Sequence record: PP942979.1
Length of the DNA stretch: 64,000 nt
Reading direction: 5' to 3' (one strand)
The first letter of the stretch is position 1. Every line of letters begins with the position of its first letter. A program made the position numbers and the translations under genes. Shown here piece by piece: positions 5,361 to 31,197 of this stretch. Below the pieces are notes generated by a model. The model made no database searches and was not told where the DNA came from. It was given only the letters and a program-made list of their open reading frames with translations.

Positions 5361-5576
5361 ATGAGCAAGCACTATAACCCGTTGCTAAACAATAACTCTG
5401 TAAAGTCAGAGTCTGGAGCAAACTCTGTGGAGAGCACAAGCGGCGCATTTGTTGTTGCGTCTGCTAACGTCTGTCCTAAGTGTAGCTCTACTACAGTGCC
5501 GACTAAACTGCTTTCCGGTGAGGACGTAATGTTCTGCACCGGTTGCCGCGTAAGTCTCGCAATCCCTTTAGAGTGA
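5361..5576 (+). CDS. small zinc-ribbon protein
   Basis: CPKC-x17-CTGC; AAGGA RBS. Confidence 0.7.
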   Translation: MSKHYNPLLNNNSVKSESGANSVESTSGAFVVASANVCPKCSSTTVPTKLLSGEDVMFCTGCRVSLAIPLE

Positions 5577-12633: not shown

Positions 12634-13404
12634 ATGAGCAACGTTGATACAACAATGCCTGAAGGTAAGTGGGAGTTCAATGAGCCAGTTGCTGCTGTGT
12701 TTGACAACATGCTGCAAAACTCAATCCCATCTTATGATCGTATGCGTGACCTGACGTATCGTTTAGGTCGTCAGTTTGTTACACCGGGATCGGCCATCGT
12801 TGATTTAGGTGCGAGCCTGGGCCGTGCGATTGAGCCTTTCGCAAGAGAGTTCGGTCAGTATCAGTGGCATCATTGCCCTCACTCGGATGGGCCTGATACA
12901 GAGACTGGTAATCACTACAGCCTGTACGAGATCGCTCCTGCAATGCGTGAGCGTTTGATGACTAACGAGTTGTTGAACAGCGTGAACGCAAAGCTGGAAA
13001 AGGAATCTCTGGTCGATGTAGACACCTTCCGCTTTAGTGGTCAAGTTGATTGCTCACTGATTCTGAGCGTGTTGACTCTCCAGTTCACCCCTATCGAACA
13101 TCGCCAGCATATTCTGGAAAAGGTATATGACTCGCTACAGAAAGGCGGCGCGTTCATCCTGATTGAGAAAGTGCTGGGTGATGACAACTACCTGGACCGT
13201 CTGCTGGTAGATACCTACTATCAGATGAAGGGCGACAACGGCTACTCGCAGGAAAGCATTGCGACGAAACGTAAGTCACTTGAGGGCGTACTCGTTCCAG
13301 TGAAGGCCGCATGGAACGAAGAACTGCTGCGTAAGGCTGGCTTCGACCGCGTAGAGTGCTTCTACCGTGATCTGAACTTCGCAGGTTGGATTGCGATCAA
13401 GTAA
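12634..13404 (+). CDS. cmoA: CmoA-like carboxy-S-adenosyl-L-methionine synthase
   Basis: WEFNEPVAAVFDNMLQNSIPSY, DLGASLG, TLQF, GGAFILIEK, GYSQESIATKRKSLEGV parallel E. coli CmoA ([22 protein letters not shown]...GYSELEISQKRSMLENV); Arg199 equivalent retained (13270-13272). Confidence 0.88.
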   Translation: MSNVDTTMPEGKWEFNEPVAAVFDNMLQNSIPSYDRMRDLTYRLGRQFVTPGSAIVDLGASLGRAIEPFAREFGQYQWHHCPHSDGPDTETGNHYSLYEIAPAMRERLMTNELLNSVNAKLEKESLVDVDTFRFSGQVDCSLILSVLTLQFTPIEHRQHILEKVYDSLQKGGAFILIEKVLGDDNYLDRLLVDTYYQMKGDNGYSQESIATKRKSLEGVLVPVKAAWNEELLRKAGFDRVECFYRDLNFAGWIAIK

Positions 13405-13449: not shown

Positions 13450-14316
13450 ATGGCTAATGTACGCCAAGAACGCTGCGCACGAATGATACGCGAGTCACTA
13501 ATCGCAGAAATAAAAAAGGCTCGCTCTAAACGTCCTTACGTCTTCCTCAGTGGCGGCGTAGATTCAAACTGTATTCTGTTTGCTGCACTGGCTGCTGGCT
13601 GCAAGCCAATCACACTGAGCTTTCATATGGAAGGCGTTAACAGTCGTGACTTCCGTGCGGCACAAGCTATCGCTCAGGAGTTTAATCTTGAGCTAATCGA
13701 AGTCGTTCTTCCCAACAGCTATGAGAAGTTGAAGAAAGATGTGCTGCTCATGGCCAAGCGTTACGCCTGTATTCAGAAGAACGAATTTGAATGTTCATGG
13801 CCGATGCTCTACAGCTTCTTCCACGTTCGCAATCACGCGGCAGAGAATGGCATCAAGAATCCTGTGACGTTTACCGGACAGGGCGCCGACCTGATGTATC
13901 TCAGTAGCAAGAAGGCGAGCATTCACTATAAAGATCGTCCAGACGAATGGCGTAAAGAAGGCCGCGCTAACCCACATCGTACTCAGGGCCGTATCTTACC
14001 TGTGATGGCGCGTGACGCTGGTGTGCGTAACATCAAGCCGTGGGACAGCGAAGAAATCCTGGAAGCGTTTCTCGGCACAAGCTGGGAAGACGTTAACAAG
14101 CCTCGTCAGAAAGAGCCGTCTCGTATGGCTTTCGAAGAAGACTTCAAACGTATTCGCGTATACAACCATCAGAACTTCCAACTCGGTGACACAGGCATCG
14201 CAGAGCATTTTGAAAAGCTGCTGGCCGATCCTGAGATGAATCCTGATCTTAAATACAAAAGCGTCGTCGGTGTTTACGGTGAGCTTGCCCGTAAGTATCA
14301 GGGAATCGAATCATGA
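13450..14316 (+). CDS. asparagine-synthetase-like ATP-dependent amide ligase (synthetase domain only)
   Basis: PP-loop VFLSGGVDS, TGQGADLMY (AsnB SGEGADELF), NFQLGDTG; no N-terminal Ntn glutaminase domain. Confidence 0.8.
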   Translation: MANVRQERCARMIRESLIAEIKKARSKRPYVFLSGGVDSNCILFAALAAGCKPITLSFHMEGVNSRDFRAAQAIAQEFNLELIEVVLPNSYEKLKKDVLLMAKRYACIQKNEFECSWPMLYSFFHVRNHAAENGIKNPVTFTGQGADLMYLSSKKASIHYKDRPDEWRKEGRANPHRTQGRILPVMARDAGVRNIKPWDSEEILEAFLGTSWEDVNKPRQKEPSRMAFEEDFKRIRVYNHQNFQLGDTGIAEHFEKLLADPEMNPDLKYKSVVGVYGELARKYQGIES

Positions 14317-14924
14317 TTCATATCATTGATGGTGGTGTTGGTTGTGATTACGTTTCTGAAAAGCTGCGTGACGCTGGAATCAACTGTCGTACTCATGCGC
14401 CAAACAACCCACGCGTTCGCGCTGCATACGCACCTTACGCCTCGCTGTCCATGGGCTTTAGCGTAGAAGAAATTGAGAAGCATATCGGTAACGTGCTTGG
14501 CACATATCGTGGCCTGTTTCTGATTAGCAGTTACATCGGCTCGCTGGTGGCACGTAGCATGATTGATCAATGCGGCCAAAGCCATAACATCATTTACTGC
14601 GATGACTTCAAGTGCGGTTCTCTGCCTGTCGTTGCTTCTTCTATTTCTGTAAACACCTACAAGAAGCAACGGCAACTCGGACGTATTGCTGGCCGTCTCA
14701 AACACTTTGACTTTGACCACGAATTTATTATTGCTGACAAGGCAGTGCGATTTGCGGCAGGCTCAGAGTTTGATGAACATGAAGCGCGTAGCGAACTGAA
14801 CAACCATGCGAAGTTCCTGTCGAGTCCGTCCATGATTGTTGCAGCACACAAACTCGGTGTGCGTAGCAGCATGTATCATAACTATGCAGGGCTGGTGAAA
14901 GAGTTCATTGAGAATCGCCAGTAG
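14313..14924 (+). CDS. hypothetical protein, weak resemblance to the glutamate racemase (MurI) N-terminal domain
   Basis: MIHIIDGGVG ~ MIGVFDSGVG, APYASLS ~ VPYGTKS; catalytic Cys absent; ATGA-coupled to the amide ligase. Confidence 0.45.
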   Translation: MIHIIDGGVGCDYVSEKLRDAGINCRTHAPNNPRVRAAYAPYASLSMGFSVEEIEKHIGNVLGTYRGLFLISSYIGSLVARSMIDQCGQSHNIIYCDDFKCGSLPVVASSISVNTYKKQRQLGRIAGRLKHFDFDHEFIIADKAVRFAAGSEFDEHEARSELNNHAKFLSSPSMIVAAHKLGVRSSMYHNYAGLVKEFIENRQ

Positions 14925-15213: not shown

Positions 15214-15669
15214 ATGAATCTTTTCTCTATTTTAAAACAGCAAGTGAAGAAAGCGCTGTCTACCGAAGCGAACCACGAACCAGAAATTCGTGCTTTGTTT
15301 GACTGGCGTTACTCAGTTGAGATCAAAGGTCAGATGTATATCGTCGGTAAGACAGGAGCAAACACCTGCTTCTATATCGAGCCGGGAACGTCTGAACCTA
15401 TCGCCTGTTACCCCGATGCGTTACTGGACAAGATCGACCAGTGGGGTTCAGGCAAGTACGTGTCGTATGCGATCTACTTCAAACGCTTCGAAAGCCCTGT
15501 TGCTGAGAACATCAAAAGTCTCGAAAAGGCAATGACAGGTAAACCGAAGACGTTTAAGAAAGGTTACTTCATCTGTGGCGTTACGCCGAAAGGCAAGCGC
15601 GTCAAGCTCTATCGTCTTCAACAGGGACTGAGCGGAATGCAGTGGGTAGCAGTGGAACCTAAAAAGTAA
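15214..15669 (+). CDS. hypothetical protein (151 aa)
   Basis: GAGGA RBS. Confidence 0.7.
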   Translation: MNLFSILKQQVKKALSTEANHEPEIRALFDWRYSVEIKGQMYIVGKTGANTCFYIEPGTSEPIACYPDALLDKIDQWGSGKYVSYAIYFKRFESPVAENIKSLEKAMTGKPKTFKKGYFICGVTPKGKRVKLYRLQQGLSGMQWVAVEPKK

Positions 15670-15991: not shown

Positions 15992-16431
15992 AACACAAAT
16001 GACCGTACCTCTGTTTGCGTTTGACAGAGCGATGCGTGGTCTACAGGTCTACACACCAGATGCACCAAAGCACGACGCTAACCCGAAAGCGTGTCGTTAC
16101 TTTACGCGAGCATTCGGCGGCAAGCAGTTGGTGTGGGGATCGGAAATTAAACCTGAACGGGTCGACCGTATTCTTAACTGAGTCTGTGTTCAAGGCATGT
16201 GCATTGCATCGTCTTGGACTTAACGCTTGGTCCGTTCTTGGCTCTGATGTTAGTGACCATCTTTATCGTCAGTTGTGTCTTCTTGGTCTTCGGTTCGTTT
16301 GTCTCGGCGATAACGATCCGGCAGGGCAGAAGTTTAGTCAGACGTTTGGGCTAGGCGCTGTCAGTCGTGACCTTGATGAATTGACTGACGAGGAACTTCT
16401 CGACCTAACTCTACCATTCGTAAGGAAGTAA
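15915..16431 (+). pseudogene. Toprim (primase-like) gene split by a +1 frameshift near 16143-16147
   Basis: N-part ...GKQLVWGSE, then a different frame gives LNLNGSTVFLTESVFKA..LGDNDPAG..DLDEL (Toprim E and DxD motifs); the downstream part has no RBS/ATG of its own. Confidence 0.7.
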
Positions 16432-17425: not shown

Positions 17426-18268
17426 ATGACAGTAATAAGTCCAATCCGTTATCAGGGCAATAAGCGAAGCCTTATCCCTATCATTCTCGAACACACGCCA
17501 AGCGTACAAGACTGTCCGCGTATGGTTGATGTGTTTGGCGGTAGTGCTACTGTGTGCGCTAACATGCCACAGAAGTTTCGCGTGTACAACGAACTCAGTC
17601 CTCAGGTATTTGAGATCGTTAAGATGCTGGTGGAGCAAGACCCGAAGAAAACTTTAGGTCAAGTTAAGCGACTGGTAAAGCACTGGTGCCTGACAAACAG
17701 CAACGAAGAAAACTACGATGCGTTTCGTACTGTCGTCCAAAAGAAGCGAACGCCTATTCTCCATTACGTGGCGCACCGACATGCACACTCGAACATGCTG
17801 CGCTTTAATCAGCAGGGTATCTACAACGTAGGCTTTGGTGATCGTGGACTGATTGGAAAGTTCGACGAACTGGAAGACGAACTCACTACGTTCCACAGTC
17901 ACATGCAGGGTGTCCACCTGACGAACATGAAGTATGGTAAGTTGTTGAGCCGTCTTGGTAGTCAACTGAACTGCAACACGTTCTGCTATTTCGACCCGCC
18001 GTATCTTGCCTCAGGTGCTATGCAGTATGGAAAGTGGACAGAAGCGAACGAGCGCAATCTACTCGCAGCGCTTGAGCAACTGAATCGCTTAGGTGTGCCG
18101 TGGATGTTGAGCAACGTTACTGAACATCGACACTTCTCAAACGACTTGTTGAAGCGTTGGCTAAAGAAACATGCAACGACTGTGCTCTACCCAAACAAAA
18201 GCTATGCGATGAACAATGGCCAGAGCGGCTCGCATGGTACCGTTGAAATTCTGGCAATGAACTACTGA
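17426..18268 (+). CDS. dam: DNA adenine methyltransferase (T4 Dam family)
   Basis: SPIRYQGNKRSL, VDVFGGSATV, YFDPPY, WMLSN, EILAMNY. Confidence 0.88.
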   Translation: MTVISPIRYQGNKRSLIPIILEHTPSVQDCPRMVDVFGGSATVCANMPQKFRVYNELSPQVFEIVKMLVEQDPKKTLGQVKRLVKHWCLTNSNEENYDAFRTVVQKKRTPILHYVAHRHAHSNMLRFNQQGIYNVGFGDRGLIGKFDELEDELTTFHSHMQGVHLTNMKYGKLLSRLGSQLNCNTFCYFDPPYLASGAMQYGKWTEANERNLLAALEQLNRLGVPWMLSNVTEHRHFSNDLLKRWLKKHATTVLYPNKSYAMNNGQSGSHGTVEILAMNY

Positions 18269-24903: not shown

Positions 24904-25241
24904 CACCAGCAATCCGCTTTAACGAGCAGACCTGTGAACTGCTGAAAAAGATCTTCGGCAACAACAAGCCTTTCTTTGTTGTGCGCCGCGACACAATCAT
25001 CGAAAACGATAAGCAGTTCGGTGAGCGTGTGTATCTGGCCAATGGCACGCATGTCATTACCGTGCCTAACGTACAGGGCCTCGATCTCGGAGATAAGCTC
25101 TATCTCGCAGAAGACAGTGAGGTGTACGAGTGGCATCCTCATTTCGACCGCCCCAAATACGAAGCAAGCAACAATCAAAAGGAAGCTCTCGCTTTTGGTC
25201 TTCATCCTATCGTCCATCATAAAGACAGCCGGAACTCTTAA
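24900..25241 (+). CDS. hypothetical protein (113 aa)
   Basis: ATGA overlap. Confidence 0.65.
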   Translation: MTPAIRFNEQTCELLKKIFGNNKPFFVVRRDTIIENDKQFGERVYLANGTHVITVPNVQGLDLGDKLYLAEDSEVYEWHPHFDRPKYEASNNQKEALAFGLHPIVHHKDSRNS

Positions 25242-26344
25242 TGAACAATCAACCTCTCGATCTGCGCGATCCCAATCAGTACGAACTGTATTCTCTGCAT
25301 TGCGTGGATGAACAGTACATCAATCTCGGCAATGCAATTCTGATGCACGGTACTGACGAAACAGATCCCGGTCGTACCGAAGACACGTGGCGCACTCTGA
25401 TCGGTATTGGCTTTCAATTGACCAACACGCTGATCGCTTTCCCTGCGTTGCTATCTGCGCGTAAGAACTGGTTCGCAGCCGTTGATGAAATGTGCTGGAT
25501 GGCTCGCGGTGAAACAAATATCGGCAGTCTCAATTCCAAAATCTGGAACGAGTGGGCGGACGAAGATGGCGAGTGCGGTCCTATCTACGGTCTGATGTGG
25601 CGCATGTGGCCTGATATCAAAACCTTCCCGACTATTGAGTCGATGAAGGAGCGTCAGATTAGCGATGCTGAAATCGAGCGTATCTCCAAAGAGATCAATC
25701 GCATGAAGGCCGCTGGTTACACTGAAACGGAAATGGCTGACGGCCGTGTGTGCTACGAAGGTACAATCGATCAGTTTGCTGATGCTCTGCGTCAGGTAAT
25801 GAATCGCAGTCGCTCACGTCGCATCCGTGTTCAGGCATACAATCCAGCGTATCTCAACATGCAGGGTCTGCCGCCGTGCCACACTGAGTTTGAGTTCAAT
25901 GTGACTAAGCCTACGCTGTATGAAACGGCTCAGATGGAAGCACGTCAGATGGCGCCTGCCGAAGACTCGCTGCACATCACGGTGACCATGCGTTCCAACG
26001 ACACGCTTCTGGGCAGACCGTTCAACATCATCGGCTACAGCGCCATGCACCAAATGATCGCGAAGTGGGCAGGCATGAACGTCGGCAGCTTTACGCTGAA
26101 TACTACCAACACGCATCTGTACACTCACCACTTCGAAGCGTTCAAAAAGCAAAGTGAGCAGTGGGCAGTTCTCGCAGACAACATGAAACGCACTGGCGAA
26201 CCTGTTGTCTATCCTATGCTGGAAATCAGCGACGACATTCTTGGCCTGACTCCGGAAGAGTTGCTTGATAACGCCAATGCTGAATGGTTCCAGCTTCTCG
26301 ATTATGCACCAGCACAGGCAGTCAAAGGACGGGTGACAAAGTGA
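25241..26344 (+). CDS. thyA: thymidylate synthase (ThyA family)
   Basis: DRTGTG-like GRTEDT, IWNEWAD..GPIYG..WR, SRSRR, LPPCH, MRSNDTLLGRPFN, NTHLY. Confidence 0.9.
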   Translation: MNNQPLDLRDPNQYELYSLHCVDEQYINLGNAILMHGTDETDPGRTEDTWRTLIGIGFQLTNTLIAFPALLSARKNWFAAVDEMCWMARGETNIGSLNSKIWNEWADEDGECGPIYGLMWRMWPDIKTFPTIESMKERQISDAEIERISKEINRMKAAGYTETEMADGRVCYEGTIDQFADALRQVMNRSRSRRIRVQAYNPAYLNMQGLPPCHTEFEFNVTKPTLYETAQMEARQMAPAEDSLHITVTMRSNDTLLGRPFNIIGYSAMHQMIAKWAGMNVGSFTLNTTNTHLYTHHFEAFKKQSEQWAVLADNMKRTGEPVVYPMLEISDDILGLTPEELLDNANAEWFQLLDYAPAQAVKGRVTK

Positions 26345-28355: not shown

Positions 28356-29066
28356 ATGGCAAAAACTGCTATCAAAACAAAGGACGGAAAGAAGAAAAAG
28401 AATGATGGGCTAAAGTTCGAGTTGAATAAACTCAGCTCCGTCAATCAATTAAAAGGCGCAGCGTATAACCCGCGTTTCATTACAGACAGTCGCCTGAAAG
28501 CACTCGAAGGTTCTTTGGGTAGCTTCGGCGACTTGTCTGGTATCGTGTTCAACAACAACATCAAATCTGGTGTGTTGATCTCAGGCCACCAGCGCTTGAA
28601 GTCAATCGAAGGCTGGAAGACTCGTATCGAGGTCCAGAAGTCTGTTGATAAGCACGGCACTATCGGCCTGGGTTATATTCACGCAACGCATCCGAAGAAG
28701 TCTGATAAGGTGATCAGCATTCCTCTGCGTATTGTGAACTGGACCGATAAGAAAGCAGAGTACGCTGCAAACATCGCGGCGAACGCCCACGGCGGTGAAT
28801 TCGATAACAAGAAACTCGCCAAGCTGGTTGAGCAACTCGACCTCAACACAATCAAGCCGCAGTTGCTTGGCCTTGACCCGTTAGAGATTCGCGGTCTGCA
28901 AGCCAAGCTGAAAGTTCAGGCTGTTGTTCAGGACGAGAAACGTGCTGGCAAGACAACTGGCCAGATGAACGGCAGTACCGGTAAGTTCAATGAGTACAAC
29001 CCTGATGATGTGGGTGAAGCTCTGAACTGCACCTGCCCGCGTTGTGGATTCAAGTTCGAGGGATAA
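28356..29066 (+). CDS. ParB/Sulfiredoxin N-terminal domain protein with a C-terminal Zn ribbon
   Basis: AAYNPR, LEGSLGSFG, LISGHQRL, ANIAANAHGGEFD, CTCPRCGFKF. Confidence 0.8.
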   Translation: MAKTAIKTKDGKKKKNDGLKFELNKLSSVNQLKGAAYNPRFITDSRLKALEGSLGSFGDLSGIVFNNNIKSGVLISGHQRLKSIEGWKTRIEVQKSVDKHGTIGLGYIHATHPKKSDKVISIPLRIVNWTDKKAEYAANIAANAHGGEFDNKKLAKLVEQLDLNTIKPQLLGLDPLEIRGLQAKLKVQAVVQDEKRAGKTTGQMNGSTGKFNEYNPDDVGEALNCTCPRCGFKFEG

Positions 29067-29067
29067 T

Positions 29068-31197
29068 ATGATCATCAAGCCGCCTACTATGAAGGAAATC
29101 AACAAGCTGGATAAACCCTGGCGTGGTATGAGTTTCTTCGCAGGTTGCGGTGGGTCTTCGACCGGTCACAAGATGGCCGGTATCGACATTGTGTTGAGCA
29201 ACGAGTTTGTTGACTCAGCACGAGAGTCCTACGAAGCGAACCATCCGACAACTAAAGTGCTGCCTCATGACATTCGCCGCTTAGACCCAGGCAAGCTGTT
29301 GCGCTTCGCTGGTCTGAACAAAGGCGAACTGGATTTACTTGACGGTAGTCCTCCTTGCTTCACCGAAGACACGATCATTCATACAGCAGACGGCATGAAG
29401 TTCATTTCGGACATGAACGTCGGCGATAGAGCAATGACCAGTGTCGGGCAGTATCATCCCGTGTACGACACGATGGTGCGACCTTACGTCGGCACGATGC
29501 ACAAAATCGAAACACTGATCAGTAGCAACAAAGCAACGCCTGAGCACCCGTTCTTTATCAGACGTCCACTTGCGGCGGGCGGTTACTCTGAACCATTCTG
29601 GTGTGATGCTAAAGACGTGCAGGAAGGCGATCTGCTCGGTACACCTCGTGTTACGCCTGACCAGCCTGCTGATGTGTACCACAATCAGATGAATCAATTG
29701 CCGAAGATGATTCGTCAGTGGGTAAGCATTCCTGAGTTCTGGTGGATGGTAGGTCACTGGTGTGATCGTGGTTCAATCGAAACTATCGGTGGCATTGAAG
29801 CAGTTAGCTTCGAGTCGCATACCAGTATTGAAAACGCGATGATTGAGCAGGCGTTTGACGCGCTTAAACTCAGCAGCCTGAATCGCATCGAAACAATGAC
29901 AGCGCAACGTAGAACGTTCCGTACTGTTATTGATGTTGAGCTGGTGCAGTTTCTGCGCCGCTTTATCAGTCACGGCAACAACACGTTCTCTCGTCGTCTG
30001 CCTGCCATGTTGTTCCACATCAATGCGGAACTGAAACAGCAATTCATTCTGGGCTGTGCTGGCATGGATTATGTGACTGCTATGGGCACAGGCATTGCTA
30101 TTACTTCTGCAAGCAAGCGCTTCCTGCTTGAACTGAATTACCTGTGCTGCTCGGCATTCAATCGTCCCCTGTTCGACGGACTGACTTGGGGCGATCTGTA
30201 TTTCGGTAGTTCGTTAACGCCTCGTGAACGTAACAGTGCGCGTGAGCATATCGGCTACCTGTTCTTGCAGGACGAGCACAACTTCTTCCATGAGTTCAGC
30301 AAAGAAGACCCGCATCTCTGGACAGAAGTGATTGAGAACCTCGCGTATCAAGCAACCTGTGACGTCTATAACTTCTCTGTCGAAGTGGACGAGACTTATG
30401 TGGCGAACGGTGTTGTTGTTCACAACTGCAAAGGCTTCTCTACTGCTGGCGTGAAAGAAGAAGGCTGGGGCAAAGAAGTTAAGTACAGTGATAACAAGTA
30501 TCAGCAGGTTGATGACCTGTTCGATCAGTATTGTCGTATGTTGAAAGGCATGATGCCGAAAGTGTTCACTGCGGAAAACGTTAGTGGTCTTGTTAAGGGT
30601 GCCTCGAAAGGTTACTTCCTTGAGATCATGCGAACGTTTGACGAGATTGGCTATTACGTCCGAGCGCCGCTGCTTAATGCTGCATGGCTTGGCGTGCCTC
30701 AGTCTCGTGAGCGTATCATCTTTATGGGTGTGCGCAAAGACGTAGCACACGCTCTCGGCTATAAGAGCAATCAGGCTGCTGTGCCTGATGTAGTGCCGTG
30801 CGATACAATGGCGTTCCTTGCAGATGCCCTGCCTCACATTCAGCGGTATAAGTCCACGAAGAAGGATATCATCACATACCTTCCTGCGATGAACGGACCG
30901 ATGCCGACGATCACTGCGGCTGATGCTATCGCGTATGAGACAGCCCGTTTCTCGTCTGCTGGGTTCGTCGAGGACAACAAAGGTCATCGTCGTAAGTTGA
31001 CCATCGACGAACTGAAAGTTGTTTCCGGCCTGCCGTCAGACTATAAACTGAAAGGCAAGTTTGAAGAACAGTGGGAGCGACTCGGTCGTATCTGTGTTCC
31101 GGCAATGACACAGGCTGCGTCGAAAGCTCTTATCGAACACGTCCTGCTGCCTTATGCTAAGAAGCGTAAGAAGAAGCCTGGCGAAATCTTTAAGTAA
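29068..31197 (+). CDS. C5-cytosine DNA methyltransferase-fold enzyme with intein; candidate cytosine carboxymethyltransferase
   Basis: Motif I FFAGCGG, motif IV GSPP|CKGFS, motif VI AENVSG, motif VIII GVPQSRERIIF, motif IX RKLTIDE; motif X reads LGRICVP instead of xGN(A/S)V. Confidence 0.88.
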   Translation: MIIKPPTMKEINKLDKPWRGMSFFAGCGGSSTGHKMAGIDIVLSNEFVDSARESYEANHPTTKVLPHDIRRLDPGKLLRFAGLNKGELDLLDGSPPCFTEDTIIHTADGMKFISDMNVGDRAMTSVGQYHPVYDTMVRPYVGTMHKIETLISSNKATPEHPFFIRRPLAAGGYSEPFWCDAKDVQEGDLLGTPRVTPDQPADVYHNQMNQLPKMIRQWVSIPEFWWMVGHWCDRGSIETIGGIEAVSFESHTSIENAMIEQAFDALKLSSLNRIETMTAQRRTFRTVIDVELVQFLRRFISHGNNTFSRRLPAMLFHINAELKQQFILGCAGMDYVTAMGTGIAITSASKRFLLELNYLCCSAFNRPLFDGLTWGDLYFGSSLTPRERNSAREHIGYLFLQDEHNFFHEFSKEDPHLWTEVIENLAYQATCDVYNFSVEVDETYVANGVVVHNCKGFSTAGVKEEGWGKEVKYSDNKYQQVDDLFDQYCRMLKGMMPKVFTAENVSGLVKGASKGYFLEIMRTFDEIGYYVRAPLLNAAWLGVPQSRERIIFMGVRKDVAHALGYKSNQAAVPDVVPCDTMAFLADALPHIQRYKSTKKDIITYLPAMNGPMPTITAADAIAYETARFSSAGFVEDNKGHRRKLTIDELKVVSGLPSDYKLKGKFEEQWERLGRICVPAMTQAASKALIEHVLLPYAKKRKKKPGEIFK
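29356..30426 (+). mobile_element. intein (357 aa) with a degenerate LAGLIDADG-type endonuclease region
   Basis: Starts CFTEDT, block B KATPEHPF, block F VYNFSV..DETYVANGVVVHN, +1 residue Cys; EN blocks MVGHWCDRG and FILGCAGMD. Confidence 0.92.

Follow-up and report, generated by a model that had tools for sequence, protein, structure and literature searches.

Motif-X arginine and a predicted CmoX-type cytosine carboxymethyltransferase with an intein in Erwinia phage phB78

When an arginine replaces the asparagine of motif X in a DNA cytosine methyltransferase, does it tell us that the enzyme has changed its cofactor? The question is raised by an open reading frame (ORF) of Erwinia phage phB78, a 261.8-kb jumbo phage of the genus Alexandravirus. 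The window analysed here is nucleotides 1-64000 of record PP942979.1, and the ORF lies on its plus strand at 29068-31197, where the record labels it a putative DNA-cytosine methyltransferase. A preliminary description of the window proposed that the arginine marks a switch from S-adenosylmethionine (SAM) to carboxy-SAM (Cx-SAM). We find that interpretation supported, though it is no longer new. We believe the ORF encodes a CmoX-family DNA cytosine C5-carboxymethyltransferase that is made as an intein-containing precursor, and on the comparisons given below we put the probability of this at about 0.8.

The characterised member of the family is SpCmoX of Synechococcus phage S-B43 (PDB 8YF3), whose structure was released in September 2025 (Yang et al., Nat Commun, 7 December 2025; PMC12783734). 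SpCmoX forms 5-carboxymethylcytosine, and the wild type accepts only Cx-SAM (PMC12783734). Its R350 takes the place of HhaI N304 and touches the carboxymethyl group of Cx-SAM in the 1.9 A structure of the complex, which bears out the proposal that a positive side chain at this position would bind the carboxylate of the cofactor (PMC12783734). A phage CmoA supplies the cofactor in S-B43, and an asparagine-synthetase-like ligase, CmoY, puts glycine on the product (PMC12783734). The suggestion that the arginine could be used to mine for such enzymes has likewise been carried out already: viral data gave 5,615 candidates with SPPC and R350, with counts of 4,257 for CmoA, 2,251 for the ligase and 1,660 for a ParBc protein (PMC12783734). 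Since the marker has thus been published together with a crystal structure, our finding confirms known biology and opens no new question. The main text of that paper mentions neither Erwinia, jumbo phages or inteins nor the two co-varying positions described below, and the portion of its supplement text available to us has nothing on Erwinia, PaBG or ligase specificity residues (PMC12783734).

The arginine and the enzyme that carries it

Motif X of the phB78 protein reads LGRICVPA (31081-31104, plus strand; CTC GGT CGT ATC TGT GTT CCG GCA), and its arginine codon is CGT at 31087-31089. The sequence and frame first given for LGRICVP are correct; the coordinates given with them span 8 codons, LGRICVPA, and the label has 7 residues. 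Three alignments agree that this arginine stands at the motif-X asparagine position. A phmmer search of the PDB lays ERLGRICVPAM on ERVGRMVPPLM of 8YF3, pairing the arginine with residue 350. The G-R pair is invariant in a MAFFT alignment of the window protein with the PaBG, Yoloswag and S-B05 proteins (A1), the last of which is identical to the 8YF3 chain. When hhalign is given a profile of 99 homologs against E. coli Dcm, G-R falls on the G-N of QFGNSV. The arginine is not there by chance. When the C-extein (the part of the protein that follows the intein) is compared with a collection of 5.8 billion proteins, 116 of the top 120 homologs have it and the other 4 have asparagine; of 80 loci from IMG/VR, 72 have it. 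The nearest relatives without it have the canonical motif, ERLGNSVPP.

To call the asparagine of this position near-invariant, as the preliminary description did, was too strong. Methionine is found there in enzymes of Flavobacterium, Parabacteroides, Cellulophaga and Rhodobacteraceae phages, and leucine in the Melnitz enzyme. These enzymes are encoded at L085:1204-2268, L086:1225-2274, L087:1213-2205, L088:1210-2286 and L089:1204-2418, the methionine ones with the motif IGMSVPP, and none of their genomes has cmoA. The methionine enzymes had been candidates for Arg-type enzymes that lack cmoA; they were rejected on the residue itself, which is Met and not Arg.

The ORF as a whole is a C5-cytosine DNA methyltransferase by its matches to PF00145 (E 6.5e-38) and TIGR00675 (E 2.4e-34, above its cut-off), and all the catalytic motifs of that class are found in it. 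The ORF list begins it at an in-frame GTG (29044) and GenBank at ATG 29068. The latter is preceded by GAGGG, and the orthologs share its methionine and begin M-(I/L/V)-IKPP; from this ATG the predicted precursor has 709 aa. The N-extein (29068-29355, plus strand; 96 aa) holds motif I, FAGCGG (29137-29154), motif II, NEF, motif III, DI, and the SPP of motif IV. The C-extein (30427-31197, plus strand; 256 aa) opens with the catalytic cysteine (TGC, 30427-30429) and continues with ENV (30574-30582), QSRER (30700-30714), the target-recognition region and motifs IX-X. The SPPC string is already present in the precursor (GSPP, intein, CKGFS), and SPP-C would be restored after splicing.

The glutamate of ENV and the arginine of RxR, which contact the target cytosine, are kept in the window protein, as are the equivalents of SpCmoX F25, E47, F48 and D69, which contact the adenine and ribose of the cofactor. 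These four residues are invariant in A1 together with SPPC, ENV and RxR, and ENV and Q-R-R are invariant in a second alignment (A2) as well. The top PDB sequence match of the 256 residues of the C-extein is 8YF3 (E 1.4e-32), followed by M.HaeIII (3e-11). P0001, which of the intein-less homologs is the closest (71% identity to the C-extein), gave an AF2 model with a pLDDT of 93, and the top fold match of this model in the PDB is again 8YF3 (E 1.7e-28, TM 0.73-0.77), with HaeIII and HhaI ranking below.

It is useful to set the protein beside the systems that are already known. With SpCmoX it shares the fold, the motifs, the motif-X arginine and the contact residues just listed, and both genomes carry a CmoA and a CmoY-type ligase. 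It differs in the 357-aa intein before the catalytic cysteine and in its gene layout, since cmoX is separated from cmoA and cmoY by 15.7 kb rather than adjoining them, and has a ParB-like gene directly upstream. SpCmoX is the one of the two with biochemistry behind it; the activity of the phB78 enzyme is predicted. The closest named intein-less ortholog is gp309 of the Pseudomonas phage PaBG (Baikalvirus), annotated as 'DNA cytosine methylase' and 47% identical over the C-extein. PaBG has the ERLGR motif, the ParB-like gene upstream, a CmoA, a 150-aa ORF and an asparagine-synthase-like ligase; it has no intein, its genes form one contiguous block, and its activity is likewise predicted. M.HhaI, M.HaeIII and E. 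coli Dcm share the fold, the catalytic-cysteine mechanism and the order of the motifs. They have asparagine in motif X (QFGNSV) and PCQ, whereas the window protein has arginine and lysine at these places and a GWGK..YS loop after motif IV.

Motif X, cmoA and the choice of cofactor

If the arginine serves to hold Cx-SAM, genomes that encode it should also encode CmoA, and the check on whether GR variants correlate with cmoA has been run. The distant cmoA gene of the preliminary description is real, at 12634-13404, about 15.7 kb upstream of cmoX. A scan of IMG/VR with an alignment of C-extein homologs gave 80 loci, each with as much as 10 kb of flanking sequence; 72 are Arg-type and 8 Asn- or Gln-type at motif X. 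A cmoA gene is in the locus in 67/72 of the former and 0/8 of the latter (Fisher p 4.4e-8; 1.5e-5 among loci with at least 3 kb downstream), a correlation that represents 1-4 independent lineages. The gap between cmoX and cmoA in the 67 loci has a median of 19 nt and a maximum of 1,463 nt, so the two genes are adjacent in most relatives and 15.7 kb apart in phB78. Five Arg-type loci have no cmoA: two are Alexandravirus-like, with cmoA beyond the flank, two have short flanks, and one, L036 (IMG/VR 3300045945_000018), is unexplained. L036 has almost 10 kb downstream without a CmoA homolog and 906 nt upstream, and its cmoA may be off the contig. The same check for GK variants found no lysine at the motif-X position among 200 natural relatives.

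Whole phage genomes tell a similar story. Our collection has 70 records with a CmoA homolog, and the records positive for cmoA match those positive for a close cmoX: 48 and 48 in Erwinia phages, and likewise in AD1, Yersinia phage fHe-Yen9-02, PaBG and Synechococcus phages. The syntenic Dickeya phage JA11 lacks CmoA, CmoY, ParB and CmoX together. This co-absence is weak evidence, since JA11 has no match to 17 of 35 window proteins tested and the joint loss would occur by chance with a probability of roughly 0.06.

The clade also contains enzymes without the arginine. Asn-type members, one of them Gln-type, are nested within it at L019, L021, L025, L039, L049, L057, L070 and L077 and in P0050, P0051, P0071 and P0091. 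These have PC-Q/V/D, no loop serine and no cmoA nearby, which gives them the look of ancestral remnants or of enzymes that have naturally gone back to SAM.

The strongest alternative to the arginine as the marker accepts that Cx-SAM is used and argues that the choice of cofactor is set by a network of three residues, so that the arginine alone is an incomplete diagnostic in both directions. Two other positions do change with it. The first is the residue after the catalytic cysteine, a lysine in the window protein (30430-30432, plus strand; PPC-K for the canonical PC-Q), and the second is a serine (AGT, 30487-30489, plus strand) in the GWGK..YS loop that corresponds to SpCmoX Ser126. Among 203 sequences, 191 Arg-type and 12 non-Arg, the first position is A/S/K/C in 184/191 of the Arg-type (Q in 2, a gap in 5) and Q/V/D in 12/12 of the others; the loop serine is found in 190/191 and in 0/12 (E/H/D/L or a gap). 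The co-variation is thus almost perfect, it is seen in all of the non-Arg lineages, of which there are up to four, and at each of the three positions the window protein follows the Arg-type. The R350N mutant of SpCmoX is dead with both cofactors, showing no reversion to SAM use (PMC12783734), and a cmoA-adjacent enzyme of an SPbeta-like phage appears to have glycine at the N304 position.

On the other side, a single N-to-K exchange at the motif-X asparagine is enough to confer or boost carboxymethylation in M.MpeI (N374K) and M.MedI (N377K). These CpG enzymes resemble the natural ones in that a positive residue at this place leads to Cx-SAM-dependent 5-carboxymethylcytosine, but they are laboratory lysine mutants of canonical enzymes, whereas the natural clade uses arginine plus the two co-varying positions. 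The co-variation itself could be phylogenetic hitch-hiking in at most four lineages. We consider the network possible, though we would not bet on it, and it refines the assignment of the ORF to the CmoX family without excluding it. The preliminary claim that this single residue links the methyltransferase to cmoA should be narrowed in the same spirit. The co-occurrence and the adjacency in PaBG uphold the link, but two further positions also track cmoA. On these alignments the arginine is a good but not a unique marker, with PC-(A/S/K/C) and the loop serine changing together with it.

The SPbeta-like enzyme is worth describing in its own right. In a Staphylococcus phage (KT429160.1, L092:7983-9682), cmoA is immediately followed by a HhaI-like C5-methyltransferase (E 3e-26 to HhaI) whose motif X, ...VVGGVIN, has glycine at the position of HhaI N304 when read by eye beyond the end of the HMMER alignment. 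Such a glycine next to cmoA suggests that arginine may be neither necessary nor the only solution, and the enzyme is a possible second, Arg-free route to Cx-SAM use in a Gram-positive phage.

A more radical alternative is that the ORF encodes an ordinary SAM-dependent 5-methylcytosine methyltransferase, in which the arginine is lineage-specific and neutral or contacts DNA, and that cmoA serves host tRNA modification, SAM depletion or something else. The classical C5-methyltransferase motifs are all present, cmoA is 15.7 kb away and not adjacent, and phage enzymes with methionine or leucine at the motif-X asparagine all come from genomes without cmoA. The CmoX paper itself raises the possibility that CmoA also acts, on the side, to deplete SAM (PMC12783734). 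Against this stand the characterised Arg-type homolog, which takes only Cx-SAM (PMC12783734), the presence of cmoA near 67/72 Arg-type loci and 0/8 non-Arg ones, the PaBG ortholog that directly adjoins cmoA, and the two other Arg-type signature residues of the window protein. Phage records have no cmoB that could spend Cx-SAM on tRNA, except for a 3.4-kb 'Salmonella phage' record that also matches cmoA, so the phages encode no cmo5U pathway for tRNA to which their cmoA could belong. We believe an ordinary methyltransferase is improbable.

The assignment of the ORF to the CmoX family has its own weak points. The window protein is about 30-33% identical to SpCmoX over the C-extein. Its target-recognition region does not align with that of SpCmoX, so that one cannot assume the GC specificity of SpCmoX for the window enzyme. 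A literature search found no report of modified DNA for Alexandravirus, Y3, AD1 or PaBG. Splicing of the intein is a prediction from its conserved residues, and the AF2 model of the intein, built on a 3-sequence alignment, is unusable (pLDDT 34). The window CmoA falls under the equivalog cut-offs (141.7 bits for TIGR00740 where 193.3 are needed, 105 for NF011995 where 285 are). It is also important to realize that the co-occurrence statistic is inflated by relatedness: in the tree the non-Arg genes form at most 4 clusters nested among Arg-type genes, the well-supported branches force one change only, and the test rests on 1-4 independent events. Well-supported branches yield one independent pair and the best tree no more than four, too few to give a phylogenetic sign test any power.

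If the ORF does encode a CmoX-family carboxymethyltransferase, the characterised homolog suggests how it would work. Protein splicing would restore SPPC, and the cysteine would then attack C6 of the cytosine. The C5 carbanion would accept the carboxymethyl group of Cx-SAM, whose carboxylate would be gripped by the arginine guanidinium where canonical enzymes put asparagine. The CmoA homolog of the phage (12634-13404) would build Cx-SAM out of SAM and prephenate. The 5-carboxymethylcytosine would probably be turned into an amide by the CmoY-type ligase homolog (13450-14316). The modification would presumably shield the phage DNA from host restriction.

An intein at the catalytic cysteine

The window ORF owes its length, double that usually seen, to a 357-aa intein (29356-30426, plus strand; CFTEDT...VVHN) inserted between SPP and the catalytic cysteine. 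It matches TIGR01443 and, at scores under the gathering cut-offs, the Pfam families Hint_2 and Intein_splicing. The PaBG and SpCmoX orthologs have an empty site exactly at SPP|C, and the occupied site is found in Erwinia, Dickeya and Yersinia jumbo phages. All five phages compared, namely phB78, two IMG/VR relatives, Yoloswag and fHe-Yen9-02, keep Cys1, the TPEH of block B, the terminal HN and the +1 Cys. By its Hint matches, these conserved residues and the empty site in orthologs, the insert is a class 1 intein. The ~200 residues in its centre gave no Pfam or PDB match, and none to a known endonuclease; a literature search for inteins in C5-methyltransferases turned up nothing relevant.

The position of the insert has two consequences. 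The catalytic nucleophile is at the same time the +1 residue of the intein, and the precursor should be inactive before splicing. From this one might argue that the gene is non-functional, with an intein that splices poorly or not at all and an arginine that has no present role: the insertion parts SPP from the catalytic cysteine, so an unspliced precursor cannot be active, no homing-endonuclease domain is recognised and the Hint similarity is weak, but we regard this as the least credible of the alternatives, since the ORF is intact in at least 48 Erwinia, Dickeya and Yersinia phage genomes and the inteins have diverged to 38-40% identity where the exteins are 74-81% identical while Cys1, TPEH, HN and the +1 Cys stay invariant. 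Such divergence around invariant splicing residues is what one would expect if the intein splices and its host gene is under selection. We predict from these residues that the intein of the phB78 ORF splices.

Partner genes and other features of the window

The predicted carboxy-SAM synthase of the window (12634-13404, plus strand; 256 aa) is a CmoA homolog by TIGR00740 (E 2.9e-41), PHROG 4752 (E 1.3e-81) and E. coli CmoA (4GEK, E 2.4e-29). It aligns with the E. coli protein from end to end (residues 11-256, 32% identity), keeps the SAM-binding D-x-G-x-S-x-G motif and the K198-R199 pair, and has an insertion of ~15-20 residues after motif I. On these comparisons it is a divergent phage branch. 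The S-B05 CmoA, which is of the experimentally active SpCmoA type, is itself only ~30% identical to E. coli CmoA, and the window protein is 43% identical to the PaBG homolog that adjoins PaBG cmoX. We tried Arg199 of CmoA as a functional criterion and dropped it. Although phB78 and PaBG keep the residue, the S-B05 protein, which is of the experimentally active type, lacks it, so it is unusable for that purpose. A CmoA homolog 61% identical to that of the window, together with a related portal protein, is encoded by Alcaligenes phage Afa-NA1 (PV550095.1, L091; a 78-kb record), which looks like a jumbo-phage relative; there is no C5-methyltransferase within 8 kb on either side of this cmoA.

Next to cmoA lies a homolog of the CmoY-type ATP-dependent amide ligase (13450-14316, plus strand; 288 aa). 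It has the PP-loop SGGVDS, matches PF00733 (E 8e-9) and has no glutaminase domain. Its identity to the S-B05 ligase, which is encoded between cmoA and the cmoX whose product is identical to SpCmoX, is 35% (E 7e-39), and that to the PaBG homolog 42.5%. The gene that immediately precedes cmoX is ParB-like (28356-29066, plus strand; PHROG 620, E 5.7e-32), and this pairing of ParB and cmoX recurs in PaBG, Yoloswag and fHe-Yen9-02. The PaBG block runs ParB, intein-less CmoX, CmoA, 150-aa ORF, ligase.

A further candidate for the module is a 151-aa protein (15214-15669, plus strand; PHROG 23597), which is 34% identical (E 6e-23) to the PaBG ORF between cmoA and the ligase. Its homolog is present in fHe-Yen9-02 and absent from JA11, and it has no Pfam or PDB match. 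Tentatively, it may be an accessory of the CmoA-CmoY modification module. A 203-aa ORF after the ligase (14313-14924) was considered as a conserved partner or a split glutaminase and has been dropped from the module. It is dissimilar to the PaBG ORF of the same size (E 0.08), matches no Pfam or PHROG family and does not start with the cysteine of an Ntn glutaminase; a homolog is nevertheless found in fHe-Yen9-02.

What is particular to phB78 is the intein at the catalytic cysteine, the 15.7 kb between cmoX and cmoA/cmoY, the 151-aa companion ORF and the extra co-varying positions. These features allow a more specific proposal for the Alexandravirus/PaBG branch, which as a joint statement is speculative and less likely than not. 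The enzyme would be gated by its intein, with carboxymethylation starting only after splicing. The CmoY homolog and the 151-aa partner would make an amide of 5-carboxymethylcytosine unlike the glycine adduct of S-B43. The cofactor signature would comprise three positions (PC-x, the loop serine and the motif-X arginine) and would have been reversed to SAM use in the few natural lineages that lost cmoA.

If the phB78 ORF encodes the carboxymethyltransferase we believe it does, about fifty sequenced jumbo phages would carry 5-carboxymethylcytosine or its amide in their DNA. Among them are phages of Erwinia amylovora and Dickeya that are candidates for biocontrol, a Yersinia phage and the Pseudomonas phage PaBG. 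The modification would affect restriction sensitivity, host range, the sequencing and cloning of these genomes and the interpretation of nanopore signals. A modification so far shown in one cyanophage would extend to enterobacterial phages on easily handled hosts. For enzyme engineers and intein biologists, points of possible interest are the intein at the catalytic cysteine, the split gene layout and the co-varying positions, along with the natural Asn-type relatives without cmoA.

Some minor observations concern the rest of the window. A D12-class N6-adenine DNA methyltransferase is encoded at 17426-18268 (PF02086, E 2.5e-23), so phB78 probably carries at least 2 kinds of DNA base modification. 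The thymidylate-synthase homolog at 25241-26344 has 367 aa, ~100 aa more than the Pfam domain, and the extra length lies inside the match; it is conserved in JA11 at 54% identity. Finally, GenBank labels a 71-aa ORF (5361-5576) 'DNA ligase' and a 60-aa ORF (15999-16181) 'DNA primase'. Both are far too short for such enzymes, so these labels look unreliable.

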